The position numbers and the translations under genes were made by a program. Of a stretch of DNA of 64,000 nt, positions 17,815 through 64,000 are shown in pieces (position 1 is the first letter of the stretch; each line of letters starts with the position of its first letter). Source of the stretch: Auanema rhodensis (taxonomy: Eukaryota; Animalia; Nematoda); NCBI GenBank assembly GCA_964057225.1, contig OZ059897.1, forward strand, positions 14,508,001 to 14,572,000, given 5' to 3'. Below the pieces are notes generated by a model. That model saw only the letters and a program-made list of their open reading frames with translations. It was not told where the DNA came from and searched no databases.

Positions 17815-17822
<8 letters not shown>

Positions 17823-17862
<40 letters not shown>
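17823..17862 (+). repeat. (GA)n microsatellite inside a purine-rich tract (~17810-18000)
   Basis: Perfect AG dinucleotide run. Confidence 0.95.
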
Positions 17863-17870
<8 letters not shown>

Positions 17871-33007: not shown

Positions 33008-35877
33008 CTATGAAAGCCAACTTGGTGAAAGAACGACTTCAGCAGATACAAGCTTGGATTCAATGAGAGGAGAAAGAGCATATGGAGAGAGGACGACAGC
33101 AGATAAAACCTGTGGAGATAAGATGATGGGAGAAAGTACGAAAGGACTAAGAATCAATGGTGAACCAACCATAGGAGTTAAAATCAGAGGATTTAGTACC
33201 ATAGGAGAGAGAATGATTGGGGTAAAAACTTGTGGAGATAAAATGAATGGAGATAATACTAGAGGTGTGAGTACTAGGGGATTGAATATACCTGGTGTTA
33301 AAATCAAAGGATGAAGAACTAGGGGAGACAGAATAATTGGAGAGAAAATCATTGGAGACAAAATGAGAGGAGAGAGGACACGAGGAGATAGGACCAAAGG
33401 AATAAATACCCAAGGACTAAGAGTGATAGGTCCAAGTACAGCAGGAGACAAAGAAATAGGGGATAATACTAATGGGGAAAGTATAACAGGCTGTGATAAC
33501 AAAGTTCCTTGTCTAACTAATGGAGTTAAAACAATTGGACTACCTACAATATCATGTTGGCGAGTTTCAAGTCTTTCAGCACGGGCCATAGCGCGGATAC
33601 TAAAAATCAAGATTATAGTTGCTCAAGTTTCAAAAAATAAAAAAGCTGAAGAATAGCAAAAAATGATTAACTTACTCCTTCTCAATGTAATGGCTTGGAT
33701 CATCTTTGGCTCTCATACGCATAAACTTCTTCAAGCTACCGGGGCGATGGTATGGGGAATTTTTACCGTACATAACTTGAAGCTGTTCAGGGGTTAAGAA
33801 AGCAAATCCTTTTTTTTCCATATGTTCTTTCTATAATCAGTTTCTCGATGTAAAAAAATTTGTTTCAATATGTCGTACCTGTTCCACGGTATACATCTTA
33901 TCCAATTTTTCGAAAATTTCGATTCTTTCAACTTCGCTGACTTCCGTAACGTTTTCTTTGGTCATATAGAGAGGAGTTCCATTTGGACCAACCATTTCTT
34001 GCTCTTGCTTCTTTAGGGTGTCCTTTTCAGCTTTATCAAGAGTATCACTAACTCCTAAAAATTAATATTATATTTTCATACAATATCTTGATAAAACCTG
34101 AAGCTTCAACAACGAAATCCATCCAAGCGTCTTGATTTGAAACATTAACACCTTGAAGCAACTTGGGTAACGAAAATTGACGTTCTTCGGTGTTTCCGTC
34201 CTCGTGAAGGGAAAACAGAGAGGGTGAAAGCAAATTGAACTAAAGAATGTCGCTCAGCAATTTTTAAAATATCCATAGATTCTTACCAAAGTATCATCTT
34301 CTTGCTCTGGTATAATAGACATGAGGCGTGGAGAAGCCAATTTCAATGTTTTATTATCGAAGTCAGATACGTTTTTACCAGCAAACATCAGAGCCAACTA
34401 TAAAATTCAATTGTTGCATCAGTTATATTTTGAAATTATACCTTAACAGCTTCGCGAAGTGTTTGCATTGGCACTCGGAATTCATCGGCTGCTTTATCGT
34501 TTTGTTCTTTTCTTAACTGTTCTTGCTGATCTTCTAGTTCCATTTTTTTCATTGCTAGTGGTTTTCTAGGATCGAGGAATTCGGTAGGAGTTCCACGGAT
34601 CATAGTCATAAGTTTTCTTTTGAGATCTTCTCTTCTTTCCTTGGCAAGCTTAGCTTGTTCTCCAATCTTTTTAACACGTACTAAGGCATCTCTCCATCTG
34701 AAAATGGCTTTTGTGAGATTATAATTTGTTTTACTCAGTATTACGATTCAGAAGTTTCTTTGTTTTTCAAAGCTCTAACAGTTTTTGTCATTTGACGAGC
34801 AACAGATGAAATTGGATCAGAGTCGTGAATACTCTTGAGATGATAGGAATCTCTTGTTACAACCTAGAATATTATTTTAAATATATATCTTTATTTTAAA
34901 TTGTGTTACCTTATAAGAAGCATCACGCTTGGCTCTAGCAGTTCCGAAGCCACCAACCCAGATAAGATCATCTTTAGAATTGTTAGTAACAATAGTTTCG
35001 TTTGCAACAACTTTTTGAGTTTTCTTGATGGTTTTTCTTTTCAAATGTGAAGTTGGAGTATCTGAATTAATATAGATGAATAAATATATATTATTACCCA
35101 TTTCTTTACCTTTTTCTACAACTGACACCTTAATACCCTTTGCAGCATCTAGAACACGAACAACACAACGAGCATGCTCAGGTACTGTTTTAGCGGACTT
35201 TGAACATTCTTCAATAGCTTCCTTTTCATCATCAACGACATGATGCATTCTTTAAAATTAAACATGAATGAATCATTGTTAATTATATTAAATCTTGTTC
35301 AGCACTATTGAATTTACTATCCACTTAATAGATTTTCCAAAAAAAAGCTTATCCAAGAAATATGTAATTAGTATGTTTAACGGTCGCTGCATAATACATC
35401 AGACAACTTGAAACAGTTTAAATAAAAATTGGATGATAAAAAGGCGATTTCTCTAATGTGATTTAACAATGATTTCAATTCAAGAAGCTTACTTTGTGCT
35501 AGCTACAGCAGCCATTAATCCAGAGAAAGCCTGGCCAAGCCATTTGTCCATTAATTCGAATGAAGCTGTCTGGTCCAAAGGTAATTTTAAGGCATTTCCA
35601 TCCTTAAAATTGCTACTATGTTTATATTTAAAAATTGTGTTCTAACTTGATACGCATGTTGAGGCGGAAGTTGAACAGGCTCAGAACAATAAACGACTTG
35701 CAACACTGTAATACAAATTAAAATAAATTATAAAAGCAATAAAACAGTAAATTTTGAATATTCATTAGTTTTAAAAATTAAAAAAATTCTATATCATTCT
35801 TTATAGGTATAGTTATACAATAATAATAGTAGTAGTTACCAACCTACAAGAGATGTAGTGAGAATTTGAAGAAGCAT
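33008..35877 (-). CDS. MLT-10/MLTN family moulting-cycle protein (DUF644), secreted
   Basis: Signal peptide [11 protein letters not shown].., then [38 protein letters not shown], dibasic site [31 protein letters not shown], and a C-terminal tandem array of hydrophobic xxLSP/LTP pentapeptides (33008-33560) ending VLSPSWLS*. Confidence 0.9.
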
Positions 35878-43029: not shown

Positions 43030-44541
43030 TTAATGAATTAATTTAAAAGTATAACCAGAATATCCCAAGTGTACAGTGGAAAGATCAAATCCTAAGGAAC
43101 TGAGTGTGTCTCTAAATAGCATATACTGTTCAGCTTTAAATTGGTTTCCAGAGGCTAAACATTCAATATGATAGAAAGGTAACAGATGATCTTCCTGATC
43201 TTGAGAAATAGATATCATCCCATTGTTTCTCATTCTATCAAACACCACAATGTAGTCCTGTGAATATACAGAATGAAAAGATAATAAAACAAGTTTAAAC
43301 CCGGTTCTCAAAAATTTCACTGGCAGGTGCAACTTCTAAATATTTTTTCAAAGTTATCAGAGAGCATCCTAAATTCCTCGACCCAGCGACTGAGAAAAAT
43401 AGAGGTTCTTGTTGATTACATTCAGTAACATTTGGAATATCTTTTCCTTTAAGATGAGCTCTGAAACAACTAGTGAATTGGCTATTTTTCAATACAAAAC
43501 TACTCAATCAGAATAGCTGCTCTGTTTTTATTCAGAGATTTCAGCGATAGACTTTTGACTGCTTTATAGTTAGAATATAGATGGATTATCGTAAAAAACT
43601 GAAATCTATTAATAGACCAAAAGTTCAAACACGAAGTTCTTTTTTTCTTACCAAATAAAGACACCAAACTAAAGTATATTTTCCACTAACTAACGGGAGT
43701 AAAGTAAGTGAGGATATTAGTGCTGCTACATTTACAAGTGTTTCTTGACTTCCATCTTTGGCAGCTACATCAGCTAAATTGTGACGAAGTGCCTTTAAAC
43801 TGATCATTTCCTAAGCACAACAAAAATCATTCACCTGGTGTTGAACAATTGATGTCCTCGTGGCCCCACCCGCAACTCCAACAACACAACGAAACAAACT
43901 TGAAGTACAAGCAAAAGGTAAAAAAAAGTTCGGGAAAGCCGGGCTTAGCAAATCTAAGAAGAATGCAAAATCGTTTAGGATATCAGCGACTAATCTCCAC
44001 TTCTTAGGGTTACAATCCAAATCAGTACCTGAAGAAAAAAGCATATAAACCCATATTTATGATAGGTAGAAACACCTCGAAAATATGTAAAGGCGATTCT
44101 ACCGATCATTCCCAGGCCATCTTTAACCAACCAAGTTAATGCTGTAGCTAAGGCTGAGGCTTTCTTAATTTTGAATTAAAGAAAACATCTTATTATAAGA
44201 ATTCACATCATTTCCAACACCAGCTCCTCTAAGCACAGCCTCGGTAGCTAAAGCTCCTGTTATTGAGCTTGCAAAAGCTTGTAATGTATCCCATTTTTGG
44301 TAATTCAAATAATCATCACTAACACTATGAGGATACCCTGTGAATAGAGTTCATGCCAATTTTATATAAAAATATTACCTTGAGGAAGAAAAACATAAAG
44401 TAAAAACTGATAAAAAGACTTCAATGACCAGTTTGATAGATTCCCAGTTTGCCTAACAACAAAACTCAACTTCCCAGAAGATTTACAAATTTCAACTTTT
44501 CTCTCTATATTGCCATCATACGATTCTACATAATCAGGCAT
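43030..44541 (-). CDS. RUSF1: RUS1 family protein (DUF647; ROOT UVB SENSITIVE / C16orf58-like)
   Basis: VFLPQGYPHSVSDDYLNYQKWDTLQAFASSITGALAT..GVG..LTWLVKDGLGMIGRIAF..LDCNPKKWRLVADILND..VGVAGGATR..HNLADVAAKDGSQETLVN, characteristic of DUF647. Confidence 0.93.
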
Positions 44542-44700
44542 GCTGTATAACAATGTTTATGTTTTCGTTCGAAAAACGTCAAAGAAACATGATTGTGTCG
44601 TCAAAACGATGAAACTATGAGACAAAATGATTCTAGTAGATTTTTCTAGCAATGAGATCATTTACCTACAAAATAATTAAACAACATAAATAACAATAAA

Positions 44701-47351
44701 TTACTTCAATGTAACAGATAATATCTTAATTTCTTGTTTTGGCCGACCACTCTTTTCATATGTTTGAACTTGGTTAATCTTTTGAACAACACTCATGCCA
44801 TCTACGACCTAAAGCAAAATGAAAACCAAAAATTAAAAATATATCAAATAATCCAACCTCTCCGAACAATGTGTTTTTGCCATCTAACCATTCTGCTGGG
44901 CATACAGTTATGAAAAACTGAGAACCGTTCGAATTGGGCCCCGCGTTGGCCATTGAAACCTAACAATTCAAATAATAATCCAATCGATTATTGCTCGTTT
45001 CCCTACCATGAAAGGCTTGTCATGCTTCAACCGTGGATGAAACTCATCTTCGAAATCCGCTCCCCAAATTGAATTACCTCCAGTACCTTTGCCAGTGGGA
45101 TCTCCAGTCTTTAAAACAGATAAGAACTTAACGTAGAATATACACAAACCTGGATCATAAAAGATTTGATAACTCTATGGAATGTTAGCCCGTTGTAATA
45201 TCCTCTCCTTGATAATGTACAGAAATTCTCCACAGTTTTCGAACATTCTCGGCCAAATAATTTCACAACAATATCGCCCATAGAAGTATGAAGAACAGCC
45301 TTCTCTGATAGCATGTTGGATTCTCTTTCTTGCTATAATATATAAGTTGAGAAGCAATGAAACACAATTATTATACTTCAACAGCTGTGATTTGATCTTC
45401 TTTCTTTGGTCTCTCATTAAACACATCTCGAGTCATTCCAGTATCGTCATTATCATCAGTATGATAAGGTTCGCAGTTTGTGAAGATGTAGAATCTGTTT
45501 TTCTTATGAGCACAACAAACCTAAAATATTCTAAGACTTATATTATAGAAAAGAAAAAAAACCATAATCGGATCAGGCTCCGTAATCTTGTTTAATGTTG
45601 GATTTTCTGCAGCTTCAGTTTCAATAGTGGCGGCTGATCCCTGAAGCCGAGCTCGTACATCAGGAACAGCTCTAAATATAAAGCTTAACTTATTATTTTA
45701 TCATTGTATGAGCACCTGCAGAGTGATACACTCATAAACCTCACAGTTTCATCTTTTCCAATTTCCCTCACAACTTTGTCTGTGACTACATTATATACCT
45801 TAATTTAAGAAAATTTGGACCAAAAAAATAAGGCTCATACCTTGATTCCTAAGGGAGAGGGATATAACAAAAAGTTTCCAGAGTGATCCCATGTAATACG
45901 AGCAAACCGAAAAGCGATTTCTACGTCTTTATCCATATCCTTTTCAAGAGCAATTCTGCGATTAAATTCCATATTTTGTAATCCATAATTTCTAAAAAAT
46001 AGAAATTTTATTTGAATTTATTCCAAAATACTTTACTTATTTTCTTTCGATTCAGAAACTAATTTATGCATAGTTTCATCAACTGTATTAGTAATTTTTC
46101 CTGTTTTTAAGTCAAATATACGAAGTTTGCGATCTTGCGATAGAATAGCAAAATTATTTCCGGTAGGGCTCATTGCTATACAGACAGGAGTTGTTTTAAC
46201 CTTAAATAATGCAAAATATTAATTATCAAAAACATTTATTTTTAGCTTTTACTAACCTTGACATATTCATAGAAATCTGTGTCCATTTTGTATTTCCATT
46301 TAATGTTATCAGGGAATGAACACTCTTTTTTGACACCAGACCAGCATTCAATCATTCCTTTATCGTCCACAGAAACAGCAATATCAAGTTGAGTATTATA
46401 CTTAATATACAATATAAATCTCATATTCAAATACTTAAACCTTACCGCCATCATCCGAACGGGAGCAGTATGAAGCTTAGTAATTTCATGTAGAGGTTCA
46501 GAGGTTCCTTTAGCATCTACCATTGTAATATTCCCGTTTTCAGCATTACTAATTGCCAAGTACGGTACAATATCGCCACCTAAAAACAAAAATAATTAAT
46601 TTGCGTTGTGAGAAAACGTATACCATGATGTACCCAACAGACCACTTTAGGAACAAAGTCGAGCTTCAAAATATTAATCATGTCAAAGTTTTCAACATCA
46701 AAGATTTTGACAGATTTGTCTTGCATGCAAGCTGTTGCTAATAAAGTACCGTTGAAATTGACAGCAATGTCAGAAAAAGCATCTGAAATGTAACATATAC
46801 CGACAACTTTATAACAAGAAATAAATTTTTAAAAAACTATTAAAATAAAATAGTTACTATTTAAAAAAAAATGAAAAATATAAGTAAACAAAAAATGTAA
46901 GAAAAACAAGGAACATACGGAGGTGACACCGAAAATGCTTAACGAATTCAATTCCTTCACTATATTTTTTCTTCCAGAATTTCAGATGACCGTCTGTACT
47001 CGCAGTCACAATGAAATCGGTGCTAAATTATGCTAATGTCATAACATTTGAATGGCCTTCCTCACTCTGTTGCTATGACATGCGATATTGTTTCAATATG
47101 CATGAAGGATTTTTCATATTGGGAAGCAGATGGTATAGATCTTAGATATGTAGACTCAAAGGGAAGAATAGGAACTAAACATATTATCGTTATAAATACT
47201 GTAACTCAATATAAATTATACCTTTTTGTTTCTTTGCAGGTTCCTCGTTAGCAACGGTTTCATTATTTACTCTTTTGCCTTCTCGGGAAGATTGTTCAAT
47301 TAGTCTATCAGCTTCAACATTTGGAGTAGGATCCCTGTTTTCTTCTGACAT
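44701..47351 (-). CDS. cyn-15: WD40-repeat plus cyclophilin peptidyl-prolyl isomerase (PPWD1)
   Basis: N-terminal [44 protein letters not shown] (WD40). C-terminal [84 protein letters not shown] (cyclophilin). Confidence 0.95.
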
Positions 47352-47828
47352 GTTCTAAAATGTTGGAAACAATTTATCAATAGAAATATCCTCTGTATAA
47401 ATGCATTGAGAAGAAATGTAGCACTTTTTTCTACTCATACAAGTTAAATTTTAATTTAAAATATAAGGAGATATATGGATTAGTAGAGATATAAGTGAAG
47501 CTTAATTATAAACTTGAATTAATAAAATTATTTATATCAATTCATCTTTGTTTGAATAATTTTAGAAAAAAAATCGAAATCTTGTGTACTGTATTTTTCG
47601 AATTCTTCCATTAAAATTTCAAAAAAAATTACGTATTCGTGAATTTATTCTCGAACACGAAAGGGTCCTGACGCGATTCTCCTTTCATTAATAGACAATG
47701 CTAGTTCTCCTAGATGTTTCTCTTCATAATTGCCTTTCCGAAACGTTTTTGTTATGTATTCTTATGAAAAATATTTTATTTATGTGTTAAAAATATGATA
47801 AATAGTTAAATAAGTAAAACGTATAGGT
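47352..47828. promoter_or_regulatory. Probable bidirectional promoter of cyn-15/PPWD1 and cct-4
   Basis: Divergent ATGs 477 bp apart. Contains two TTCnnGAA units (47636-47643, 47648-47655) resembling degenerate heat-shock elements. Confidence 0.45.
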
Positions 47829-50027
47829 ATGTCAGCAGCAAAAGCGGCACCAAAGGTTGCTTCAGCACCAAAGTCTGCCTCCGGCACTGAATCCGCATTC
47901 AAGGATAAGGACAAGTCAGCCAGTGTTAGAAACAGGTAATTCGTGATAATAATTTCTTAAATACTAATATATTCAGCAACATCGTTGCTGCCAAAGCTGT
48001 AGCTGATGCTGTCCGTACTTCGCTTGGACCTCGTGGTATGGATAAAATGATCCAATCTGGAAATGGAGATGTCACTATCACCAATGATGGAGCCACAATT
48101 CTCAATCAAATGAGTGTAATTCATCCAACAGCTAAAATGGTATCAACAGATTTTCTATTTTTATAATTTCTTTTTTTTTCAGCTTGTTGAGTTGTCCAAA
48201 GCTCAAGATATTGAGGCTGGTGATGGAACCACTACTGTTGTTGTAATGGCTGGTGCTTTATTGAACGCTGCCCAGAATCTCTTAGAGAAAGGTATTGTAA
48301 TAATTATTTAGCGCTTTATAACTTAACTTGTTCAGGAATCCATCCAACTACCATTTCTGATTCCTTCCAAAGCGCTGCTAGTGAAGCTGAAAAGATCTTG
48401 ACTGGAATGAGTTCACCTGTTGATCTTGGCGATGATGAGTTATTGACTAAAATGGCTACTACTTCTCTCAATTCTAAGGTTTTTTTTAAACTTCGTTTAT
48501 TGTTTTTGATTTTTGCTTTCTAGGTTGTGTCTCAACATTCATGGCTTCTTGCTCCAATGGCAGTAAACGCCGTTAAGAAAATTATCGATGTTAGTAAGGA
48601 TACTTCTGTCGATCTCAAGATGATCAAGATTATCAAGAAGATGGGAGATACCGTTGAGGTAACTTGTTAAACAATACCATGTGAACTGTTTTTCGGTTAC
48701 AGGAATCTGAAATGATTGAAGGAGCTCTTATTGATCAGAAGACAATGGGACGAGGTGGTCCAACTCGAGTTGAAAAGGCCAAGATTGGTCTTATCCAATT
48801 CCAACTTAGTCCTCCTAAAACTGATGTATTTGTAAACCAAGTTTTTCTTTATAATATTGTATTTAACAGATGGAAAATCAAGTTATTATTTCTGATTATA
48901 CTCAAATGGATCGTGCCTTGAAAGAGGAGAGAACCTACCTTCTTGACTTATGTAAGCAAATCAAAAAAGCCGGATGTAACGTCCTTCTTATTCAAAAGAG
49001 TATTCTTAGGTTAGTTTAACTAACTGTTTAGGATATTTCTTTTTTTCTTAGGGATGCTGTTAATGAGCTTTCCCTTCATTTCCTCGCTAAGATGAAGATC
49101 ATGGTAATCAAGGATATCGAACGTGAAGATATTGAATTTTACTCTAAGGTATTAATAATTTGAGAATATATATGGCTACAATGGCTAATACAGATTCTTG
49201 GTTGCCGCCCAGTCGCTTCTGTTGATCACTTTGTTCCTGAAGCTTTGGGAACTGCTGATCTTGTTGAGGAGATCCCCACCGGTGGTGATGGTAAAGTCAT
49301 CAAGGTGAGAAAGTTTATTTTGTTTTGATCTAATTATTTCCTTCAGGTTACCGGAGTTCAAGTTCCCGGGCAAGCCGTCTCTATTTTGCTTCGTGGATCC
49401 AACAAGCTTGTCTTGGAAGAGGCTGATAGATCTCTTCATGACGCTCTCTGTGTTATTCGTTGTCTTGTTAAGCGTAGAGCTCTTCTTCCTGGTTATTTTC
49501 AATTAAGAAATCTTAAATTAGCTCACAATTGTTTATAGGTGGTGGTGCTCCTGAAATGGAAATTGCTGTCAAGTTGCGTCAACTTGCTCAAGCCCAGACT
49601 GGAGCCACTCAATATTGCTGGAGAGCTTTTGCTGATGCGTTGGAATTGGTTAGAGTGCTCTTAGATATTGTTACTTACAATTTTTTACAGATTCCATACA
49701 CCTTAGCTGAGAATGCTGGTCTTTCTCCAATTCAAACAGTTACTGAGCTCAGAGCTCAGCATGCCAATGGAAATGTTGATTACGGAGTTAACGTTAGAAA
49801 GGTTCGTGTTTAGTAAGTATGTGCTATATTTTATATTTGTATTGTAGGGATATGTCACCGACATCCGTGAAGAAAATGTACTTCAACCTCTCTTGGTTAC
49901 ACTTTCTGCTATCAAGCAGGCCTCTGAGACTGTTCGCTCCATTTTGAAGATCGATGACATCGTGAGTTTCATGCTCTATATATATGAGTTTAATTTTTCT
50001 TGTTTTCAGGTCATGGCAGTTCGCTAA
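47829..50027 (+). CDS. cct-4: T-complex protein 1 subunit delta (CCT4 chaperonin)
   Basis: [122 protein letters not shown]. Confidence 0.98.
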
Positions 50028-50683: not shown

Positions 50684-53042
50684 TTCTGTTACCTAGAACA
50701 AATATATAATGACTGAATGAGAAATTCAAAAGTCGAAAAAGGTTAAATAGAACTGAATGATAAATAATTGGAAGGCAATTATAGTAATGAAACTGTTTAT
50801 TCTTGTGATAATGATGATGGGTTTTGCAGACGAATCACATGGGTGTTAATTGCGTTATAAACTTAAGGGAAGCTTAATGAAACTTTGCAAACAACTAAAA
50901 TGCTCTCAAAAAAAGAATAGCGTCAAATCGAAATTTGATTAAATAGTTGAAGATGAGTTTTTTGGTTCATACACTAGGTAAGTAATTACGAAGCAAAACG
51001 CAAAAAAGAGATTGGTCGAGTATGACATATTAATCGGAGAAACTGCTTTAGGGCAGAGAGCGAAGATGTTATTGGTGAAGAATTGCCGAGAATTGAAGTT
51101 ATGTTTGTTGCCGATGAGCTACATTAGTTTTTTATTCGCGAGAAACTCATCCATCTAGAGAAGGCATTGAAGTAACAATTGAAGAAAGCCTGAGCAAGAG
51201 AAATGTTTTGTATTTCTAGTTATGAGTGTAAGATTATTACTTTTTTCTCGTATATGAAGAAACAAAATATAACACGGTTCGTTGATTCTACTAAATACAA
51301 TTTCAGATCACTGCCACTACTAGATTCGTAAATAGACAAAATATATTGAAAGAGATCACAAGGCGTGTCAATTAGTTATGATCGTGACTTCTTCAGGCAG
51401 AAACATAAATATATAGATAAATATATCTATATATATATATCTATATGTATATATAGAGAGAAAGAGATAGATATCCATACATACATCTTCATACATATAG
51501 ATGTAAATGCTCGACAGACTTGAGAGAGAGAGAGAGAGAGAGAATAGAAAGAAAGAGAGAAAAAAAGAAAGAGAAAGGTTGGATATGGGAAATAAATGAT
51601 AAAAAGCAAAATATGATCTTCATCATCAACCATTGAATGAGGAATGTTACCTATAATGTTATGATTATATATGAATGATACAGCTTATATTGTCAAAAAG
51701 CCTGAAAAATATATGAGGAGGACTGTTCGACATATACCTGAGATGACACATCAAGTGAACAAAGTTTTTTTTTCAAGTTAAGTCTGCCCTTCAATCCAGA
51801 TGAAAATAATTAGAATAGTTTAAAGAAGATGTATGAAATGAAGATGTATGCTCAGAGTACTTGTTTGAAATATAATTTATTGTTTAAATTATATTTTAAT
51901 GTATGTATATATTAACTTTGGAAGGCTTATTAAATCATCCTATCAATCTTCAGCTATCTATCTATTCTCAGTTATGCATATAACACAAATTCATCTCGCT
52001 ATTTTATCTAAGAATTATAAATAATATAACTATAATGGCATAAAGAAATATGAAAAATGACTATGACAAGAGTATCATTTCAAGAAAGAGAACAAAATTG
52101 TTAAATAGAAATGTGTTCTGAGTGTGCAAGCTCTAAAGCAAATTCGTATAAGGATTTCCTATTCCAACAACCCATTCAGTATCTCACTAGGATGACCTCA
52201 TGAACCTATTACGTTGGTCTAAAATGGTAGTGCCTCCTACAAATTGGTAGAAAACTCGAAATGTTGTAGGTTATAAAATAAAAAAATTTAAAATAAATTG
52301 ACATTTATTTTTCACAAGTTTCTACGTTTTTACATGACTCTTGAAAATTTAAACAAGATCAAATAATTGTCAAGGGTTTCGTTTTGATTGTTCAACATAC
52401 TTCTCTGTTAATGAGAAATAAATAAGCCTTAACTAAGCCTATCAAATGTATTAAAAGCAGAAGCATTGTTCCTATTTCTATTAAATAGAGAATTACTTTG
52501 CCTTCAGCGTTAGGGTCGTTAAGCATTGAAATTTAGACAATCTTTGGTTCATGGCAATGACAAGAAAAATGTGCATCAATATACACCTTGGAGAAGCACC
52601 AGACAAGAGATTAAGGGGAATTGAAAAAAGAGTTGCAATAAGAATCGTTTACGTAATCTAAGACTCTGATTTCTGAAGTCTAAACGATAAATTAAAACGC
52701 CGAGACTTCATGCTCAACTATACCATAGTTCATTCAGTGAACCTTATACTGAAGAAATTAGGATTCAACTTGAGTTGACATAACGTAGATCTACTAATAT
52801 ACCGGATTTGAATGAATAAGAAACGGAAATGAAGAGGGAGTGTGGGCGTTAGGACATATGAAAGCTAGGTAGAGGGAGATGAAGTGGTGAAACTGAGTTT
52901 AAACTCAGTAGAGGTATAAAAGACATCTCAAGATGAAATAAAGGGCTTGAAGTTACATGGTGAGTTGGGGGCGGTCCTATTGCAAGCTCGCTTGTCTCCA
53001 CCTACTTCTAAGCTTTCTGTCCTCGTTTTTCCTTGCTATCTT

Positions 53043-53084
53043 TCTCTCTCTCTATACCTCTCTATCTACCTTTCTCTCTCTTTC

Positions 53085-53180
<96 letters not shown>
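53043..53180 (+). repeat. (TC)n microsatellite
   Basis: Long TC run, perfect from ~53091 to 53180; source of the spurious SLSL ORFs. Confidence 0.97.
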
Positions 53181-53183
<3 letters not shown>

Positions 53184-56100
53184 ATTTTCGATGTAATATC
53201 GTCTTAAAGGGTGCGGCTAAAAGACAGATGAAGAAATTGACGCCGAAATTGGCATTTTCCTTGAATACTTTATAAATCAAGCACAATGAGATAGTTAATA
53301 GCGAGTAAAACGAGCAACTAGTTTTGAGAATACAATAACAAATAGATCATAAGAACGTTAACAACAATATCGAACTATTTTACTTTGATAAATTGACTGA
53401 TCACACCCCCACATACATGTCACATATTTATATTATTTATTTAATTATTTTCTCATCACTGAACGATGTTTGAAGTATCACACCTGCAAATATGATGCTA
53501 CAATACTCTTTGAATGTCATTCAAGCAGAAGATAACCAGAAGGCAAGAAGGAGTGTGGGATGTGGTCGCATCTCTATGCAAAAGACGATGGGGAGTTGAA
53601 CAGGGAAAAGCAAGCTTATGGAATCATGTGTTTGTTGTTGAGTCACAATTGTAGCCGATCTTCATATGCATTTTTCCAGGACATGTGACGGACTAAGATT
53701 GAGATCAGCTCTATAAACTTCAAAGGATTCTAAGCTTGCAGATGAATTTGGCAACTTTTTATATTTTTTGCAAGTTGTTAAGCTTCTCTAAACTCGGAGG
53801 AACATACCACACTCACAGCAAAATAATGTTTTTAGAAAGTTCAATATGAAATTGTGAAACCTGAATGAATTTAAACATCGAAGACTTAGGATAGATAGAA
53901 AAACATCTGATTCATTCATCATGGCATTTCCGTGAATGTTTCAAGAAGTTCAGAAAACTTTCAAATTCAAATGAATTTAAATGTGAAATTTAGCTCAAAG
54001 AAACATTTCGTCTACTAAAATTAAGCGAAATATCAGAAAAATCATGCATGGAGAAAAAGGCAAAAATTTCATTTGCATTTTAATATGTCTTACGGAACTT
54101 CATACATGCTATATGCTTAAATAATTGAATTTATTTCATATATAAAACTAAATAAAACTAAATAATCATTCAAGAGTGCTGATTTTCTGATGGATTGATG
54201 ACGAAACATTTATTTAATTTTTATAAGTTCCGTTTTTTTTTTCCTCAATATTTTCAGTTGATGAAAAGATATATGAAATAAGAACAATAGAACATTGTTC
54301 GTCTTCGTACCCATAACTTTCATCTCAATTTTCCAATTTGGTTGTATTCATCTTGACTTTCAAAGCGCGTAGTATTCAATAGGATAAAATTTTTTTTTTT
54401 TTGCTGCAAAAAAGCAATCATAACAGATAATGTGAAACATTGGTAAGTTAGATGATCATATTCCACTTTCGTGAAAGTTCTTTACTATTTTTGTATAAAA
54501 TAAAACAAAAATTTGTTATCAAAAACAATAAACTTCTGATATGATAATGCTTCAACACGGAGTAATAAACAGAAGACAACTGTTCATTACCAATAAAAAA
54601 AGAAAAATTGACGTCAATTCCTAAATGTTACTGCATCTAATACAATAAGAGTTGGTACAAAACGTTTCGGTCAATGTATATATATATATATATTCTTGAT
54701 TTTTGAGCTTAGTATGACGTTCTTTTGGTCGGGAAACAGTGGTGTACTGCTCCATCTCACTTTATTTGATTCGACGGAAGTATTGCCAGTGAACAAAATT
54801 ATAAGGGTGCTAATAGTGAAGCTGTGGTTAGCAATAAGTGATGACGAAGACTAAAGTTACATCAAGCTAGCTTCCATCCAAGCAAGTAAGGATACGTATG
54901 CGTATGCCACCCACGTCCACATTGGGAGCGCCTTTACAGCTTAATTTCATTAATGGCTCAGTATAATGGGCACCATCGTTATGAAAAGAGTGAAACAACC
55001 CTAAATGGAAAGTTTTTCGAGAGACCCAGACTCTCAATAAGTGAGCTAGAATTCTCCGGGTATATACACATATCTCTCGCCTTCGCTCTATAGCTTTAGA
55101 ACTCTTAACACTCTTTCAAGCTCTCAAATACTCCTCTCCTTATTTGACTAAAAATATATTTATATATCCGATCGGAAACTTTTCATAATAGAATCTATGT
55201 ATTCAATTCTGAAAATGTGTTATATAGCATAGTATATAAGGATATATTTATATATGGATAATGATTTGAGAGAACAGAAGTCATAACAACGTCATCATGA
55301 CGAAGTTTAGCTCTTTCTTGTTTGACTCAAGCATGTATAGTATATATCCCTGTGAGATTTTGAAGATCACTTATGAAAATAAATTACTCAGGAATATGAA
55401 AACATCATCGGGCATTATTTACAGGAAAAGTTTCTGAAATATTATGATGAACGATTATAAATAACTATTTACCATTCAAAATATAATACTATCTTTAGTT
55501 GCAGAAGGTTAATCATGACGATATATACATATATCATGACGATAGATATATATATACACGCTTTCCTCATTTTCATCATATGTTTTTCTATCTTCATAAC
55601 AGAGGTAAACGTGAAAACAGAAGACAACTTAGATTTTTTTCTAGAGAATCGATAACAAATATAATGATTCATACTTGCAAAAAGCAACAAAATAACAAGT
55701 TCTTGTACGAATTTTATTTATCTGGAGATGAAAAAGGTGAAGCACAAAAAAAAACAGAGCTAAGCTATCACAACAATCTCGAAATTCATGGGCTTCTGCA
55801 ACTTGATGAAATCTGGATTAAATACATTTCCTATTTTTTTTGTCGAAAAAAAATGTTTTGAAGTCATTTCTCATTAACACACAAACTGAAATGTAGATAG
55901 TTTGTAGGTTTATATTATTCAAATGTTTTCGAACGAAATTTTATTTCCTCTGAGAAATAGAATTCTAGTGTACATTTTAAAACAAAAAAAAACAATCACC
56001 CTTTAACTTAAATATGAAATTCCAATCAAAAAATTGTTTATTTTTTAGGTGAGCAATTGTTTTATTCTCAAAGCAAATTAGATCAAATATTTTATAAAGC

Positions 56101-57423
56101 TCTGACGGAATTCATCAACTTTAATTGTCACCATTTAACAATGTAATATAATTTTTTTTTGTTCAGATTTTTTTTTCAAAAGTTAGCTCATTACAAAAGA
56201 ACACTAGCTATAGTTAGACACATTTGTTCCCGAAATACACAATTTGAGAGATCAATCATCGGATGTTGAATAACATTAAAATCTTAAAAATAAAAAGAAT
56301 AGAACAAAGGATGTCACAGTATCAAATAACTAGTGTATAAAAAATCAGAACTACATAAAGTAAAATACGGAACTCTACTAAACAAGAACACACATCTGAA
56401 TATAATGAAGCCGAGGGAGAAAATTAACGATAGAGAATGTGTATGTCGTGTACTGAATGCAGATATATCTATGTAACATAATGAAAAAAGAGCAGAATAA
56501 GATCTCATCAGCAGAATTATACTTTTTTGAACTAAACTACAAAATGTTTGAATACTATTTTCACATAATATAGAATAAGATAGAGTATTCTCTTGCATAA
56601 AAACACAACAAATTTCGTAAATTCATAATGAACTTTTTCACACATTTTATTGTTTGTTATTTTTGTGTCCCATGTCAAAGAAATTACGGAAATTCAAAAT
56701 TTGAACAAAAAATCAAATTTTTCCGAATTGTAGCCTGTTCAAACCATTTTTCGTAGGAAAACAACGTGTTCAAAAATACACAACAATTTCAATCTGAATA
56801 CATTATATTTCAGAAATGTCTCCATTGAACTTTTTTATACTTTTTAATTATTTTCATTGTTTAATTTATGGGGAGATTTGACCACGTCTCAGAAAATAAA
56901 AGCTCAATTGAAATACCAAAATGCATAGAAAACTAAACTCATAAGCCAAAAGCTATAAAATGAAGAAATGATATTACTTTAATGAAAAACAATGAAAACG
57001 TTAGTCATGAGGATAGGCTGAGAACGACAATCTGACACTTTCATTGCCTATAAACTCATCAGACGTATTAGCACTGAAGTGCGAATGAACGCGAATTGCT
57101 TGGAGACTTTACTTGCTTTATTGCAATACCTTCTACGCAAATTAAACTGACATGAGAACATCAAAGTTCATCTCATATCAGATGTATATGTCTGCTATTT
57201 GAATACTCATTCGGTTGATCTCCATTTCTTGGGCCTTCTTCGTAGTAAAAATCTTATATTTTCCGAGGGCGGGGGACGTCTCATTGCTTTTCATTTCCAA
57301 AAAAAATTGCCAATTTTATAGAGAGCAATATATATTTTATTATTACATATTATACAATAATCTACATTGGCTCATCGTAGTACGACGATTGGAAATAATT
57401 TAATTACAAACGGCCTATGACCG

Positions 57424-60046
57424 TTATACATCTATAGAAGGAATCTGATAGTCGTACGGACTGCAATAAGTCTGGGGCGAAAACATATTCATATTAGTAG
57501 AGACACCTACAGAATTTGGCAAAGTCTGAAAAGAATTAAGTAGTAAACTGAATTTACGCATTCAACACATAAACAGAAAAAAAGTGTTTACAACTTGGAT
57601 ACTTACCGTTATATTTGTCTGATGATCATGTTGAGTGGATTTCACATAAGAATAGGGTTCCTAGACAAAGGAATTATAAATAGAATTCTTTAAAAAATCG
57701 TATCGTACGTTACTGTTGTTAAAAACACTTTTCTGGTCGGAATAATTTTGTCCATCATCAGAAAAAGGGGAGCATGGAGTAGTGCATGATTCATATCCAG
57801 AAGAATGACCATCACTAGATCTTCTCTTCTATAATTTAAAATGAATTAACCTTTAATAATATATCCTGTAGCAAACCTTAATTTTAATAGAGCTAACTGT
57901 TGTCTTTCTCTTTTTGCGAGTTACTCTATTGCGTTTTGATTTTTCGATGAGCATAGCAATATCCATGAAACCTTTTACCCTTGCTACATCAACAGGATAA
58001 TGATCCTTAAAGAACGAATATTATGATAAATAATTTGGGAAATAATGAGAATCTAACCAATTCGTCTGGAATATTTCCATTTGCTCCAGCATTCAAAAGT
58101 GCTTCAACTGCATTGTAGTTTCCACAGATAGTAGCTTGCCACAAAGGAGTGCAGCCCTAAGAATACATCAACATATACAACATATATGTCTTATTTAAAA
58201 ACCTGAGAGTCTTCAGCATTGATATTAACTTTTGGTAAATCGACGAGGTATTTAATCATCTCAACATTGTTCATTTTGGCTGCATAATGGAGTACAGTCA
58301 TCCCATTATAATGAAGTGAAGTCTATAATAGTTTGGAGTGAGGAAAACAATTTTTAACTCATAATATGTATTTACAAACCTTATCTCCAGAATCAGCTGG
58401 ATCAGCACCGGCTTTGATAAGAATTTTTGCAAGTGGAATAGCAAGTATAGGTGGATATTCAGCACACAACATAAGCGGCGTTTTATCTAATTCATCAACA
58501 GCATCAATAGAACGTCGACCATCGACCAACTGTAACGTCAAGGATTAATCAAAAAAAAAAGCAGAACTAACCGAATTTACAATCTTATCATATGCTAAAA
58601 GTAATTGAAGCATATTCTTATCCATATTATGAACAGCATGATGTAGGCAAGTTGAATAGTTAATGTTCATTATAGTTCCGTCTGCACCACTGTCTAACAA
58701 AAATTTTGCCAGATGGTAGTGTCCTCCACGAACAGCAACCATTAAGGCAGTCTCTTCTCCTAAAGAATATGAGTATATGTAAAGTTGAAACTTCCTTTTA
58801 CTCACTTTCATCTTGAGCGTTAATATAAACGCCTTTTTCCAATATTCTTTGGGCAGACGCAACAACCGATTGCCAATTGGCTCGTCCACAGCCTTCAGCT
58901 AGCCAATGAAGCTCTGATCTTTCACTGCTTTTCTGGAAAAAAATACATTGAAACAGAACTTTTTTTTGCAGAGTTGTACTTCTTCGTGTTTAATAACAGT
59001 GTAAGTTGGTCGCTGAACTGTTATTCTCGATATGATAGTTCTGAAGACAATTACGTAATGCTAATATAATTTTCTCACAACACACCCTCCAGATTCTTGA
59101 GATTGCCCTGAACCATTTGCACATGATCGTTTAGCAGGTAGACCTTCCTCTATATGTACAAGATCTTTATCTGAAATAGGATTAACTTCATGAAAACACA
59201 CATGCTGTAAATGTTCATACCAGAGAGTTCGGCAGGAGGAAACCATACAGGAGCAGTTACAGCTCTTCGCTTTCTGCTTTTGGTTATAATACCATAAACT
59301 AGGCCTAATACGGCAACTAATGACATCAGACAGAAAGCTAAGGCAACGATGGATGAATCACGTTTTTCTTTTTCATCTTGAGTTCTGATGGAATGATGTT
59401 CACTTAGTACTGCTGCTGTTACAGAAATATTCAGTTCATCCCATTCCTTCAATAAGTATCGAAGTTGCCGTATACATATATATACAAATTACCTTATATT
59501 TTTGAATTCGTTCTTGAATATATTCTGAAGTACAGATATCGCATTTTCTCATAGTTAACCGAACTTTTAAAGTTACAGAAAAGACGGGCAAATTCCCATT
59601 TTCATCAGTCTAAATAGGACATAATAAAGTCGTTAAAAGCAAAGTGTAACCTCATAAGGATCCTCCGTGTATTCATAATTATCAAAGTTGCTCACATCTG
59701 TTAGTAATTCAGCTCTAGATCTAGTAGCCATTTGAATATTTCCAAGAAATATTCCTTGGTATATAGCAAATACATACTCAGTCATGAATAAGGTTACAGA
59801 AACATCTACTGTGGTCTAAAAGTAGAAAACATAATTATTTTAAGAAAAAATATGGCTTACAAATTCTTGGATTGGATCATTTTCGCAATCTTTCTTTTCG
59901 GAATATCCATGATCACATTCGATATCACAAAATCCATTATTATTAATTCTTTCACAGTAATTAGCCATATGAGCAGCAGGAAAATGCTCAGCATTTATAA
60001 ATAGAAATACAGAAAATAAAATAGAAAATCTTAGAGATTTATCCAT
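57424..60046 (-). CDS. LIN-12/GLP-1 (Notch) family receptor lacking EGF repeats; 15 exons, ~642 aa
   Basis: Signal peptide MDKSLRFSILFSVFLFINA; LNR-like YCERINNNGFCDIECDHGYSEKKDC; HD-like region; TM IVALAFCLMSLVAVLGLVYGII; RAM KSRKRRAVTAPVWFPP; ankyrins SELHWLA..GVYINAQD, ETALMVAV..GADGTI, TCLHHAV, KTPLMLCA..GADP, GMTVLHYAAK..NINAED, GCTPLWQA; basic NLS-like RKKRK/KKRR; S/T/P-rich tail. Hand-spliced exons sum to 1929 nt in frame with no internal stop. Confidence 0.88.
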
Positions 60047-60733
60047 GACTAGATGTAATGATTAGAGTTAGCTCTCCAAGAGAGACGACTAAACTGAACT
60101 GCAGACTAACGAAGATCGTTATAGGTACGAATGACTGCAATATTTGATCAGAGCAAATCCGTAGTCTGATAAGGTTATGAACTCTGAGGCCAATCAACTT
60201 ATGATTTATTGGTTCCTATGGTCATATCCCAGTTATGGTTGTTCAGGGAATGTGCCAATGGCATCGATTGGACAACTAGGTGTGAACATGATGTACTGTT
60301 ATATGATTATATGATATACGAGCCAACCGACAATATCTTGAAATTAAAGATTTATTCTTAGAAAAATATTGATAGAATAATAAATATAAACTGTGAGAAA
60401 TATGTTAGAAAGAAAAGAGCCGTTTATAGATCACAGAGAAATATAGAATTTAACAACCTTTTAAACAACCGCTCCCCACAACAATAATGCACAAGTTCAA
60501 ATTATAAAAAAGTATTAACACGTAATATTAAAATTATTTTCAATTGTGGAGGAATGAGGAATCATTTTTTTCTCTTAATTGTTGGGAGAAGATAGCATAA
60601 GAATACAGTTAGTCTAACGCTACATCGGGAAGCCCGATATAGAAAGCAATTCTTCTAGAACGCAAAGTATAAAATAATAAAATACAAATTATGCAATCTA
60701 GAAATTTGGCACTTATACAATATTAGACGATTT

Positions 60734-63700
60734 TTAACGGTTTTTAAGTTCGTAATGAGTTCTCTTCGTTAATCTACCGCAACAGCATCCGAATAGGAAC
60801 AAGAAGAAGATGACACCACCTAGCCATCCCAGCAATGATATCTTGTTGGGGTGGCTGTTTATAAGTTCTACAACATCGTGCCAACTATCAGGAAGAACCA
60901 TCTCGAACTCCTTATGAGCCTTCATCCATAACCGGTTTCTATCAACTAATTTATTTCTACACCCGGGGGTTAATTGAGCATTTGAGCTTTCCGCAGCATC
61001 CATCAAACACATGATTACTAAAACAATTTCAGTAAATATCAAGATAATATGATAATTTTTTTCAGAAATAAGCATAAATTATATTAAATGGACAAAATGG
61101 ATACGCGAAAAAAATATTATTATTTCATTATAAAGTAATTAGATCGGTTGCCTTTTCCATATTTTCAAATTACTACGTAGAATTATAAATAAGAACTAGA
61201 TATTTACCTCTGCTGTTACCGGGAGGGACATCCCTACATAGGCGTTGAATATCAATGCCACAAGCCTCGTGAAGAGAAGGATCAAGGTTGATATCGACTA
61301 ACGTTTCTTCTGTTCTACGTGCCAACTGCAAAGTAGTATATATGCATATTACATAATGATGAACTCCATACCTCCTTACTACAGCTAGGATCACCAATTA
61401 CTCCCTTATAGAAATCTGCTTTCAAACATTCAAGAACAGTATCGAAGTTACCTCCCTGCAAATAAATTATTAATAACCATCAAAGACTTTTGGTTAACTG
61501 TTTGAATGACAGAAGAAGAACAATGTCTTTCAATAGTGGCTTTGCAAGCATCATACAATGAGGGATCAAGTTTAGGGTCAAGCTCAGCTTCCAAAATAGC
61601 TTTAGTAATCTAAATATGTTTATAACACAAAATAATTTTGAGCATATATAATACCTCTTCTTTACATGGAGTTCCAATGTGAATTTGTTCGTGAGCTGAG
61701 CGTCTGTATTGCTCTCTCAAGCATCCGACTACAACTCCTTTCAACATTGTTTGGGCATATTGCGGTTTATTAATTTTGTCTAGATCTTCAGGACAACTGA
61801 AAAGCATTTTCACATTAAATGAAACTACATGCAATTCATACTAAGTTTTAATTTCCTCACGACAAGCACTCAAAAGGCCAGGTCTTAGTCTAACATCGCC
61901 AGCAGCCTCTTGCATACGTTCCTATTACAAATCGGATAAAATATGGATAATAAATCTAATTGTATACCTGAACAACAGCTTTACATTCTCTTTGAAGCAA
62001 TCTAACAATCTTAGTATTTGTCAAACATTCCAAAACATTTTCTCTATTTTGAGCTCCACAGAACTTGCCGATATCGTACTTGCATTTCTTCTACACATAA
62101 ATCATGAATATGATATTCAATTAAAAGCAAGTACCTGAAGTTCATCATCCATTGTGTTATCAACAGCTTCAATCTTTTCTCTATAGAACACCATAGAACG
62201 ACAATCATGTCCCAAAGCATTGAAGTTTTGACGGAGACATTCAACGGTATCTTCAAATGAGTCAGCTTCGTTACATCTGAAAACATTACATAAAACTAAA
62301 TGAAAAACTTAATTTTCTACCTGAATTTCTTTAACTCAACTGCGCACTTCTGTGCGAGTTGTGGATCAGCATCGGCCATATGTTCTTTGTCGTCAAACTA
62401 AATAAGCCTGTTAGTTTTACAAATATTAACATAAAATATTCTTCGTGCAACTAACAGATCATATTAACATATATAGGTATAAGCTATAAAGTGGAAAGGA
62501 GAGGTAGGTAAACTATCAAACGAAACTGTTAATTTCTAAGTGAAATTAAGTGCTAAATATTAGTATGACTCCCAAGTTTAATGCAGACACCCCACAACAC
62601 CAACTCACTTCTACCTGTTCTTGCTGAAGATAGGCCACTTTAAGTTGCTTCTTGCACGGATCAGATAAGTCAGAATTGTGGCCAAGAACCTTGTGCTTGA
62701 ATCGGACTTCAGAGAGACAACGGATAATTTCAGCCCTAGAATTTTAGCACTGCCTCATAAAATTCGAAAAACGACTTACTTATCGTTTCCATGTCCAGTA
62801 CAATACTTCTCGATATCAGGAGTACAAGCCTTTTGGAATTTGTAGGAGAAATGGTAATCCCGGAGAGAAACCAGTTCAAAGTGGTTAACATAAGACTTAC
62901 ATTTTCCAGTCATTTCTGGGGTATCCTGTAATATAGACAAAAATATTATAAGCGTAAAATTTCCTCAATAAAACCTTATTTCTAAGAAGACACTCCATTA
63001 CATCTCCGTGATCAATTTCGTCATTTTGGAATTCCTCACAGTAGGTGGTGATAACTGGCTTACATGCTCTAGTTAAAGCAATATTAAGTTTAGTGTCCTG
63101 TGATTCCATTTGAGTGAATTTCACAAGTTCCTAAAAAAATATCTTAGTGTGGCAAGAAAAGCACATTACCTCATGACATCTTTTATGTTTATTTACGAAT
63201 TCTGGCTTTTCAAAGTTATCTTGTAAACATTGCATTTCCTATAATATAAAATTTATAATTTAGCATAAAAATAAGATAATACCTCCATAGGCTGGACATT
63301 ATGACTACAATACTCAGAAAGAGCATCACGGCAATTATCTTCAACTTCTGGCATCAAATTTACACGGACAGCGCGAGAATGGAGAACACGTCGAACTTCG
63401 ATACCACATTTGTAGGTTAACTAAAAATAAAAAAATAAAAAAGATTAGAAAAAATAGACAAACAGGATTTTTCTCGTCATAGGCGCTTCTGTAAAGACAA
63501 GCAAGAACTTGTGGACCTGGGTCAGGAATATTAGCATCATTGCTAGCCATATGCCAATTATCTAATGCATGACACCTACAAAACAAACATGAATGACTCA
63601 AAAAAAGAAAAAACTTACTTATTAATAGCTTCATCGTGACAAGCAGCATAAAGTTGTGGATCTAATGTCCAATCGCGAGCCATGAAGTATTGTACCTAAA

Positions 63701-64000
63701 CAAGCAATATAAGTTGAGGTTTTCAAAATGGCATAAAATAAACCTCTAAAAGACGTTTCTCACAGTCAGCAGTCATATCAGAATTATCAACATGCTTCAT
63801 TAAACACTCAAGCGTAGCTGTCTCAGAAACAGCATCCATGGAGCACACGCCATCAATTAAGGGACGGCAAGATGCATAAAGGACACGATCCACCTTGTAG
63901 TTGGAGCCAATATCGGCAACCTAACAAACTTTGTTTAGAAAAATAATGTAAATGTATTCACAAACCTTTACAACTTGAGATACTGCTTGAAGACACTGAG
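60734..64000 (-). CDS. GLG1: Golgi apparatus protein 1 (GLG1/ESL-1/cysteine-rich FGF receptor), 3' part; 5' end lies beyond the window
   Basis: Repeated GLG1 Cys-rich modules (DWTLDPQLYAAC, DINLDPSLHEACGIDIQRLCRDVPPG, ELDPKLDPSLYDAC, HGDVMECL). C-terminal TM and tail GCCCGRLTKRTHYELKNR*. Confidence 0.93.

Follow-up and report, generated by a model that had tools for sequence, protein, structure and literature searches.

To our knowledge, in all described Notch receptors the ligand is bound via EGF repeats and the receptor is held off by three LNRs. LIN-12 carries 13 EGF repeats and GLP-1 carries 10. When both EGF and LNR regions are taken out of Notch/LIN-12 by engineering, the receptor is active constitutively, and loss of EGF/LNR in laboratory or oncogenic truncations leads to ligand-independent signalling. 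The LNR/HD region is also where lin-12(gf) and glp-1(gf) alleles are located. Constructs deprived of EGF repeats but retaining intact LNRs are inactive, whereas LNR-deleted ones are constitutive, and in the NRRs of human NOTCH1/2 one LNR is too few for autoinhibition. Partial Notch genes also exist in nature: human-specific NOTCH2NL is a paralogue that keeps one half of the receptor, and its product is secreted, consists of EGF repeats only and has neither TM nor ICD. The Auanema rhodensis gene described here likewise keeps one half of the receptor, but in this case it is the half with TM and ICD, and there are no EGF repeats.

The locus belongs to contig OZ059897.1 of assembly GCA_964057225.1. 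All positions given below are those of the 64,000-nt stretch that was analysed (14,508,001–14,572,000), which is called here the window, and all features discussed lie on its minus strand. The gene model rebuilt from the sequence extends from ATG at 60046 to the stop codon at 57426–57424 and contains 15 exons separated by 14 introns of 41–81 nt, all of them GT..AG, with the frame remaining unbroken from ATG to stop. Logan contigs of three runs (X1–X3, three samples of one study) were used as RNA evidence. These contigs are spliced and identical to the genome base for base, with no mismatches or indels seen, and their pieces agree with the lengths of all 15 exons. The longest of them (X1 record 1, 2266 nt) is composed of 227 nt of 5′UTR, 1929 nt of coding sequence and 110 nt of 3′UTR. 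According to the contigs, exon 8 ends at 58572, i.e. its donor site is used 9 nt past the first possible GT, and this fixes the product length at 642 aa, compared with approximately 1300–1430 aa for LIN-12/GLP-1. The 3′UTR (57314..57423) has AATAAA at 57341 and one FBF-type element, TGTATAATA, at 57356; contigs end at 57314 and 57321. Thus, the intact 15-exon frame of about 642 aa announced in the original prediction, which had been made from the sequence alone, agrees with both the rebuilt model and the spliced RNA. Since spliced contigs were present in X1–X3, the locus is not an unexpressed one, and we are dealing with a real, transcribed and correctly spliced gene.

The DNA upstream of it belongs to a GLG1-like gene, identified by Pfam PF00839 on five of its exons. 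The last exon of this neighbour, encoding TM, a short tail and the stop codon at 60734–60736, together with its 3′UTR (60393..61017, delineated by RNA contigs and Pfam), sets the upstream limit of the Notch-like gene. The neighbour is complete, having a stop and a 3′ end of its own, and its transcript contigs terminate at 60393–60419, leaving 120–146 nt to the longest Notch-like contig. The distance of 687 bp between the GLG1 stop and the Notch-like ATG, given in the original prediction, was verified. An operon with GLG1 is not claimed, because no spliced-leader loose ends were found and the relative depth of the two transcripts differs about 30-fold between samples. The 5′UTR of the Notch-like gene (60047..60273 in the longest contig) is unspliced and was followed up to 60273 in X1, 60188 in X3 and 60125 in X2. 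It contains an in-frame TAA at 60064–60062 and an out-of-frame uORF of 21 codons with ATG at 60264. The X1–X3 contigs have neither joints to upstream exons nor loose ends, and transcripts joining EGF-coding exons to this locus, for which a check had been proposed, are not among them; rare isoforms with other first exons are possible. The six-cysteine EGF pattern is absent in every frame of the window, and exons 1–4 gave no EGF match in Pfam. One may still suppose that further 5′ coding exons have been missed, since contigs do not mark transcript starts and AG at 60050–60049, situated between the in-frame stop and ATG, could accept an upstream exon in frame. However, three independent contigs cross 60050 unspliced, and GLG1 occupies the rest of the window on the upstream side. 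Along with a chance resemblance to Notch, which is considered below, this reading is highly improbable. The contiguous 5′UTR, the in-frame stop, the complete GLG1 and the lack of the EGF pattern in the window thus uphold the expectation that no EGF exons lie upstream. Tandem EGF repeats, which are the DSL-binding part of Notch/LIN-12/GLP-1, are absent from the product (0 against 13 and 10).

The sole Kyte–Doolittle peak above 1.6 falls on aa 189–210 (59285..59350), predicting a single transmembrane helix, in which G208-I209, at most a hint of gamma-secretase (S3) cleavage, stand four residues ahead of the basic stretch. With a signal-peptide-like N-terminus, one TM peak and KSRKRR after it, the product has the type I single-pass topology of LIN-12/GLP-1. 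The basic stop-transfer KSRKRR and the subsequent VWFPP form a RAM-type segment (59231..59281, outlined by PDB alignment), where RKRR occupies aa 214–217 and VWFP, 13 residues after TM, aa 223–226 (59248–59237). In PDB the second-best match to the TM/RAM exon was the LIN-12 RAM peptide (3BRD chain D, 11/18 identical residues, E 0.12), and the alignment spans KSRKRR...VWFPP.E; the exon also gives TM-type matches to the TM of ErbB2. The RAM motif occurs nowhere else in the window and appeared in none of 20,000 shuffles. Like that of LIN-12, it has the form RKRR-x5-VW-x-PP-x-E and lacks the HG and GF dipeptides seen in vertebrate RAM. The succession of TM and RAM with VWFP, proposed earlier, is therefore corroborated by both hydropathy and the LIN-12 peptide. 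The linker between RAM and the ankyrin domain (exons 5 and 6 with the intron, aa 232–280, 58980..59170) produced no Pfam match on exon 5, and the positions of RNA contigs fit both exons. Having approximately 60 aa from RAM to ANK, the protein is shorter in this part than LIN-12/GLP-1.

The ankyrin domain (aa 284–530, exons 7–12 with introns, 57940..58923) was delimited using Pfam, PDB and a self-built repeat profile. Pfam Ank/Ank_2 matches were obtained on exons 8–11. Five repeats are clear (aa 323–507), and divergent repeat-like segments adjoin them at 284–322 and 508–530. Since the self-built profile recovers only its five seed repeats, repeats 1 and 7 are putative, and "about six" repeats of the original prediction are better described as five at the Pfam level plus two divergent flanking segments, which together would make a domain of seven units. 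Exon 7 can be aligned from end to end with the first ankyrin repeat of LIN-12 (2FO1 chain E), including the atypical LHW.A... at its start; this start and a fourth repeat three residues longer are traits shared with LIN-12/GLP-1. Among natural proteins of PDB, LIN-12 (2FO1_E) matches exons 7 and 9 best, with the match of exon 9 falling on LIN-12 repeat 2 instead of the collinear one. Taken one by one, the matches to LIN-12 are weak (E 0.12, 0.28 and 0.0068). In phmmer searches of PDB with exons 8 and 10, multi-repeat ankyrins and DARPins lead by summed scores, which is not diagnostic, and exons 1, 2, 3 and 12 gave no Notch match. Just as in LIN-12/GLP-1, the ankyrin domain is followed by a basic cluster and a Ser/Thr-rich tail. 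The cluster (aa 530–554, 57820..57942 with intron 12), read from the sequence, is NLS-like and occupies the same place as in Notch ICDs. The expected Ser/Thr/Pro tail is present at aa 555–642 (57424..57819 with introns and the stop codon) and is rich in Asn as well; its exons 13 and 15 had no Pfam match.

Given the low statistical weight of every single-exon match to LIN-12, one may ask whether a single-pass ankyrin protein of other origin only looks like Notch by chance. Such a coincidence is hard to reconcile with the combination and order of elements (signal peptide, LNR half-motif, TM, RKRR, VWFP, ankyrin repeats and basic cluster), which is known only from Notch. Affinity to Notch is deduced from the match to the LIN-12 RAM peptide, the LIN-12 matches of ankyrin exons and an LNR half-motif that is unique in the window. 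Judged by its sequence, the gene encodes a predicted Notch-family (LIN-12/GLP-1) protein of type I membrane topology.

Relatives did not come to light in the searches that were run. Among 1.84 billion representatives the TM/RAM exon retrieved no relatives, the sole match being an unrelated repetitive protein (P0001). For the 114-aa ORF containing exon 8, one candidate shared words and none scored, in a search whose length window excludes full-length relatives, and among metagenome contigs exon 8 found only a bacterial ankyrin protein (L001). In tblastn the product finds only itself, being encoded by a single copy in the window. A literature search turned up no nematode Notch receptor that naturally lacks EGF repeats, though such absence is not a proof. 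The missing relatives, as well as an ectodomain too divergent for Pfam, might be taken as signs of a transcribed 5′-truncated copy of a canonical Notch gene that has lost its function and is drifting. We consider such decay very unlikely: the frame of 642 codons is open over 15 exons, all 14 canonical introns are correctly spliced, and none of signal peptide, TM, RAM and ankyrin repeats is damaged. The large divergence from LIN-12 implies great age of the gene, and over such a time an AT-rich frame under no constraint would have closed.

The ectodomain is 168 aa long and has six cysteines and one sequon. The start codon and the signal peptide (aa 1–19, hydrophobic core FSILFSVFLFINA, 59990..60046, read from the sequence) share one exon with an LNR-like four-cysteine module (aa 31–54, 59885..59956) of the form C-x8-C-x3-C-x9-C with NG-x-C-D-xx-C-D. 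Its core pattern, C-x5-NG-x-C-D-xx-C-D, occurs once among the 128,000 residues of the six-frame translation of the window, and in none of 20,000 shuffles. The module, present as one copy with four Cys, agrees with the first half of the LNR consensus only; Pfam PF00066 gave no match on exons of the gene at E up to 10, and exon 1 matched no NRR in PDB. Next to it is the juxtamembrane ectodomain (aa 63–187; exons 2, 3 and the first part of 4 with introns, 59354..59815), approximately 125 aa with Cys140/Cys143 and one sequon for N-glycosylation, at N162. Only position and length make it HD-like, the Cys pair being compatible with such a domain, as exons 2–4 had no NOD/NODP match in Pfam and none in PDB (exons 2, 3 and 4). 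The feature search of ESM Atlas with exons 1 and 2 returned nothing usable. Consequently, of the original description of this part, the location of an LNR-like module directly after the signal peptide and the position of an HD-like region behind it hold, while the names LNR and HD themselves lack a match in Pfam or PDB; we infer them at the level of motif and position. No recognisable furin S1 site was found by reading the sequence, and the sequence AAVLSE, situated some 20 aa from the membrane on the outer side, resembles the vertebrate S2 context. So, at most one degenerate four-Cys LNR is found here against three six-Cys LNRs in LIN-12/GLP-1.

Such an ectodomain is no stub, and its retention of the first half of the LNR consensus could mean that the protein is a regulated receptor, in which the LNR remnant and the HD-like region close the S2 site until some partner opens it by acting on the short ectodomain. 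An EGF-less DSL-type protein, another membrane protein or an endocytic/mechanical pull would be candidates for this role. At the same time, Pfam, PDB and ESM Atlas searches with single exons revealed no recognisable ligand-binding module, there is no DSL- or EGF-like gene in the window, and a single LNR does not suffice for autoinhibition in the human receptors mentioned above. On balance, we see a regulated receptor as unlikely, though worth serious consideration. The Cys module and the structured-looking juxtamembrane region of approximately 125 aa would fit a regulated ectodomain as well as a constitutive one.

Comparison with engineered receptors points in the other direction. In Notch1 delta-E/NEXT, Drosophila N(ECN-deleted) and LIN-12 minus EGF/LNR the signal peptide nearly abuts the juxtamembrane region, TM and full ICD, as it does here, and the DSL-binding region is missing in all of them. 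What differs is that the Auanema gene is natural, spliced and expressed, and that its product keeps more than delta-E stubs do, namely the LNR remnant and about 125 aa of the juxtamembrane region. By analogy, this retained part may place the protein between inactive EGF-deleted/LNR-intact and constitutive LNR-deleted constructs. With no EGF repeats and at most one of three LNRs guarding the S2 site, the ectodomain would most likely be shed by an ADAM protease without DSL ligand, after which gamma-secretase would cut the shed protein and the released intracellular domain would bind LAG-1/CSL via RAM and ANK. The output would in this case depend chiefly on the time and place of gene transcription. 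Ligand-independent signalling is plausible on these sequence grounds, and to the whole explanation, i.e. an EGF-less member of the family with ligand-independent shedding and transcription-set output, we give about an even chance.

The opposite outcome would be a decoy or dampener: a poorly shed, membrane-bound protein that holds LAG-1/CSL on its RAM-ANK part or competes for ADAM and gamma-secretase. It would be compatible with the intact RAM motif and the lack of a recognisable furin S1 site, and also with the length of the ectodomain, since one of approximately 170 aa is too long for direct cleavage by gamma-secretase without prior shedding. A pure membrane sink, however, would have no need of the NLS-like basic cluster and the long tail, both of which are kept, and we regard this role as quite improbable.

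Returning to transcription-set output by ligand-independent shedding, RNA abundance gives some indication of control at this level. In X1–X3 the Notch-like gene was covered at a depth of 70–89 versus 157–241 for the contig of neighbouring GLG1. In X4 only its fragments were registered, with a depth of 2–3, versus 176 for the GLG1 contig. Near-loss of the transcript in X4, while GLG1 stays deep, means that the Notch-like gene has its own regulation, and the contrast between samples suggests its stage-, sex- or condition-specific role.

Thus, the locus encodes a real and new architectural variant of Notch, in which the signalling half is complete and EGF repeats are absent. A natural expressed receptor without the parts whose removal unleashes Notch in the laboratory would be a natural experiment on the minimal Notch regulatory region. 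It would show that a pathway dependent on cell contact can be rewired within a lineage so that it becomes cell-autonomous or responds to a different trigger, and would offer a compact, genetically testable construct, for instance in C. elegans with its readily scored lin-12(gf)/glp-1(gf) phenotypes. More tentatively, and with some doubt outweighing belief, one can imagine that this locus is one member of a lineage-evolved family of natural EGF-less Notch receptors, which would serve as transcription-gated ligand-independent sources of ICD or answer a wholly non-DSL trigger on a minimal regulatory region with one LNR. If such a family does exist, Notch targets would, in some tissue or sex, be activated independently of cell contact.

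On the minus strand, from 60046 to 57424, the Notch-like gene consists of 15 exons, and each of its 14 introns is of the GT..AG type and 41–81 nt long; with the end of exon 8 at 58572 the joined exons give an open frame of 642 codons (ATG at 60046, stop at 57424–57426). Four sequencing runs of one 2019 study (X1–X4) contain this stretch, and the Logan contigs assembled from each were aligned to 57250–63200; since these contigs are spliced, they are RNA-derived. The first X1 record (2266 nt) comprises 227 nt of 5'UTR (60273–60047), 1929 nt of coding sequence and 110 nt of 3'UTR (57423–57314), with gaps between its listed pieces exactly as long as the unlisted exons. Contigs of X2 and X3 have the same structure (5' ends at 60125 and 60188, respectively), and for all three runs no mismatched letters, indels, loose ends or additional joints against the genome were reported. 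Thus, the 15 exons and approximately 642 amino acids of the original prediction are borne out by both the genomic reading and spliced RNA.

The same contigs all cross the ATG into unspliced genomic sequence, where an in-frame TAA lies upstream (60064–60062). The next gene on this strand is complete, the predicted distance of 687 bp between the ATG and its stop codon is correct, a six-Cys EGF pattern is absent from every frame of the whole 64-kb window, and the product, used as a tblastn query on the window, matched its own gene alone. All this agrees with the expectation that exon 1 is the first coding one and that no EGF exons precede it. A distant alternative first coding exon is unlikely in view of the 5' contig evidence, but contigs cannot reveal true starts or rare isoforms. 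The longest 5'UTR, reached by the X1 contig only, also contains an out-of-frame uORF of 21 codons (60264–60199, minus strand; ATG at 60264, second in-frame ATG at 60225).

The upstream gene joins into a single open frame ending at 60734–60736, carries the GLG1-type Cys-rich repeat (Pfam PF00839) on five exons and terminates in a transmembrane segment with a short tail. Spliced contigs confirm this homologue of GLG1, Golgi apparatus protein 1 (60734–64000, minus strand); in X4 one of its exons ends at 62609 instead of 62615 and the 62397–62615 joint is missing, suggesting that X4 uses an alternative donor displaced by 6 nt. GLG1 transcript contigs end at 60393–60419, leaving 120–146 nt (gap 60274–60392) before the longest Notch-like contig (60273), a spacing similar to that in nematode operons. 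Judged by contig depth, which is a crude measure of abundance, the Notch-like gene was assembled full-length in X1–X3 at a word depth of 70–89 alongside GLG1 at 157–241, whereas in X4 only fragments with depth 2–3 were found at a GLG1 depth of 176. This within-study contrast suggests sample-specific regulation independent of GLG1, as well as stage-, sex- or condition-specific expression of the Notch-like transcript, and favours a promoter of its own over plain operon co-expression, even though the gap is short. Simple co-expression is disfavoured, as the two genes are not co-abundant and contigs displayed no spliced-leader ends at their boundary. That this intact, transcribed frame is a drifting duplicate seems very improbable. 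Its 3'UTR has one FBF/PUF-type element, TGTATAATA, at 57356–57348 (minus strand), 15 nt before AATAAA. In C. elegans the germline, which is under Notch control, is regulated by PUF proteins; a motif this short and AT-rich, present once, may be due to chance.

Downstream, about 7 kb of DNA with little coding potential separates the gene from a TCP-1/CCT chaperonin subunit gene (47930–50024, plus strand, PF00118) and a divergently oriented cyclophilin-type peptidyl-prolyl isomerase gene (44168–47354, minus strand, PF00160); no DSL-like neighbour was found in the window. A 200-aa open frame at 33008–33610 (minus strand), in which SP-x-x-LSP-type repeats make up almost the entire sequence and Extensin_1 matches weakly, below threshold, may be an exon of a Pro/Ser-rich structural protein. 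Long CT/GA-type microsatellite tracts at 17680–18147, 51371–51684 and 52920–53272 give Ser-Leu runs in several frames.

In the product, the sole hydropathy peak (aa 189–210) is followed by KSRKRR (aa 212–217), VWFP (aa 223–226), a linker of about 60 aa, an ankyrin region (aa 284–530), a basic cluster (aa 530–554) and a Ser/Thr/Pro/Asn-rich tail up to aa 642. For the exon encoding the transmembrane helix and RAM, the second-best match in the whole PDB was the RAM peptide of LIN-12 in its complex with LAG-1 (3BRD; E 0.12), with 11 of 18 residues identical over the basic stretch, VW.PP and the subsequent Glu, in line with the predicted RAM. Exon 7 aligned over its full length to the atypical first LIN-12 repeat in another LAG-1 complex, 2FO1 (E 0.28), LIN-12 being the sole natural protein among its top PDB matches. 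LIN-12 was also the best natural protein for exon 9 (E 0.0068), but the top stretch was its repeat 2 rather than the collinear one; exons 8 and 10 were uninformative there, multi-repeat ankyrins and designed repeat proteins scoring above all else. Single-exon Pfam queries gave Ank, Ank_2 and Ank_4 matches on exons 8–11 and nothing beyond these families. Where about six ankyrin repeats had been expected, five are clear, and a profile made from them picks up those same five only; the flanking segments aa 284–322 and 508–530 are repeat-like solely by position and pattern. With good confidence, the intracellular half can be assigned to Notch of the nematode LIN-12/GLP-1 type, and the reading that the gene is not Notch, or is mis-modelled, appears the least probable of all.

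The ectodomain includes a signal-peptide-like N-terminus (aa 1–19), a four-Cys module (Cys31/40/44/54), a Cys pair (Cys140/143) and a sequon at N162. Neither the LNR core pattern nor the basic-stretch-plus-WxP pattern turned up in 20,000 protein shuffles, and the 128,000 six-frame residues of the window contain a single instance of each; this supports Notch affinity and gives no formal P value, both patterns having been picked after viewing the sequence. Spacing from the last module Cys to the first hydrophobic strand, the length of the following segment and the Cys pair presumably resemble the human NOTCH1 HD, and AAVLSE, about 20 aa outside the membrane, we take to resemble an S2 context. 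The core pattern, order and length are compatible with the predicted single LNR-like module and HD-like region, but Pfam detected no LNR, NOD or NODP on single exons and the PDB search returned no Notch chain for exons 1–3 (nor for exon 12). By motif, order and length the ectodomain is putatively Notch-derived.

Among proteins, an exhaustive search with the transmembrane/RAM exon yielded a single unrelated repetitive protein, and a word-index search with the exon 8 frame found no relative inside its length window. Metagenome contigs yielded just a bacterial ankyrin protein and no Notch-like relative, Atlas searches were empty, and the literature searched contains no description of a nematode Notch receptor that naturally lacks EGF repeats.

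The gene produces a membrane protein that lacks EGF repeats and carries a complete Notch-type intracellular domain. As neither EGF repeats nor three LNRs were found, it is not a canonical Notch member. Since it lacks DSL-binding repeats and has at most one degenerate LNR, its S2 site, judging from established work on Notch autoinhibition, would probably be poorly protected. The putative LNR-like module leaves some room for a receptor still autoinhibited and opened by a non-DSL partner, which we consider rather unlikely; a dampener tethered in the membrane and acting on LAG-1 or on the proteases, conceivable with such a RAM and ankyrin region, is more doubtful still. An EGF-less Notch-family receptor cleaved without ligand and feeding LAG-1 is the reading we hold with evenly balanced confidence: ADAM shedding and gamma-secretase cleavage would go ahead without ligand, and the intracellular domain would be delivered to LAG-1. 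Such an architecture would surprise a Notch specialist and is directly testable.
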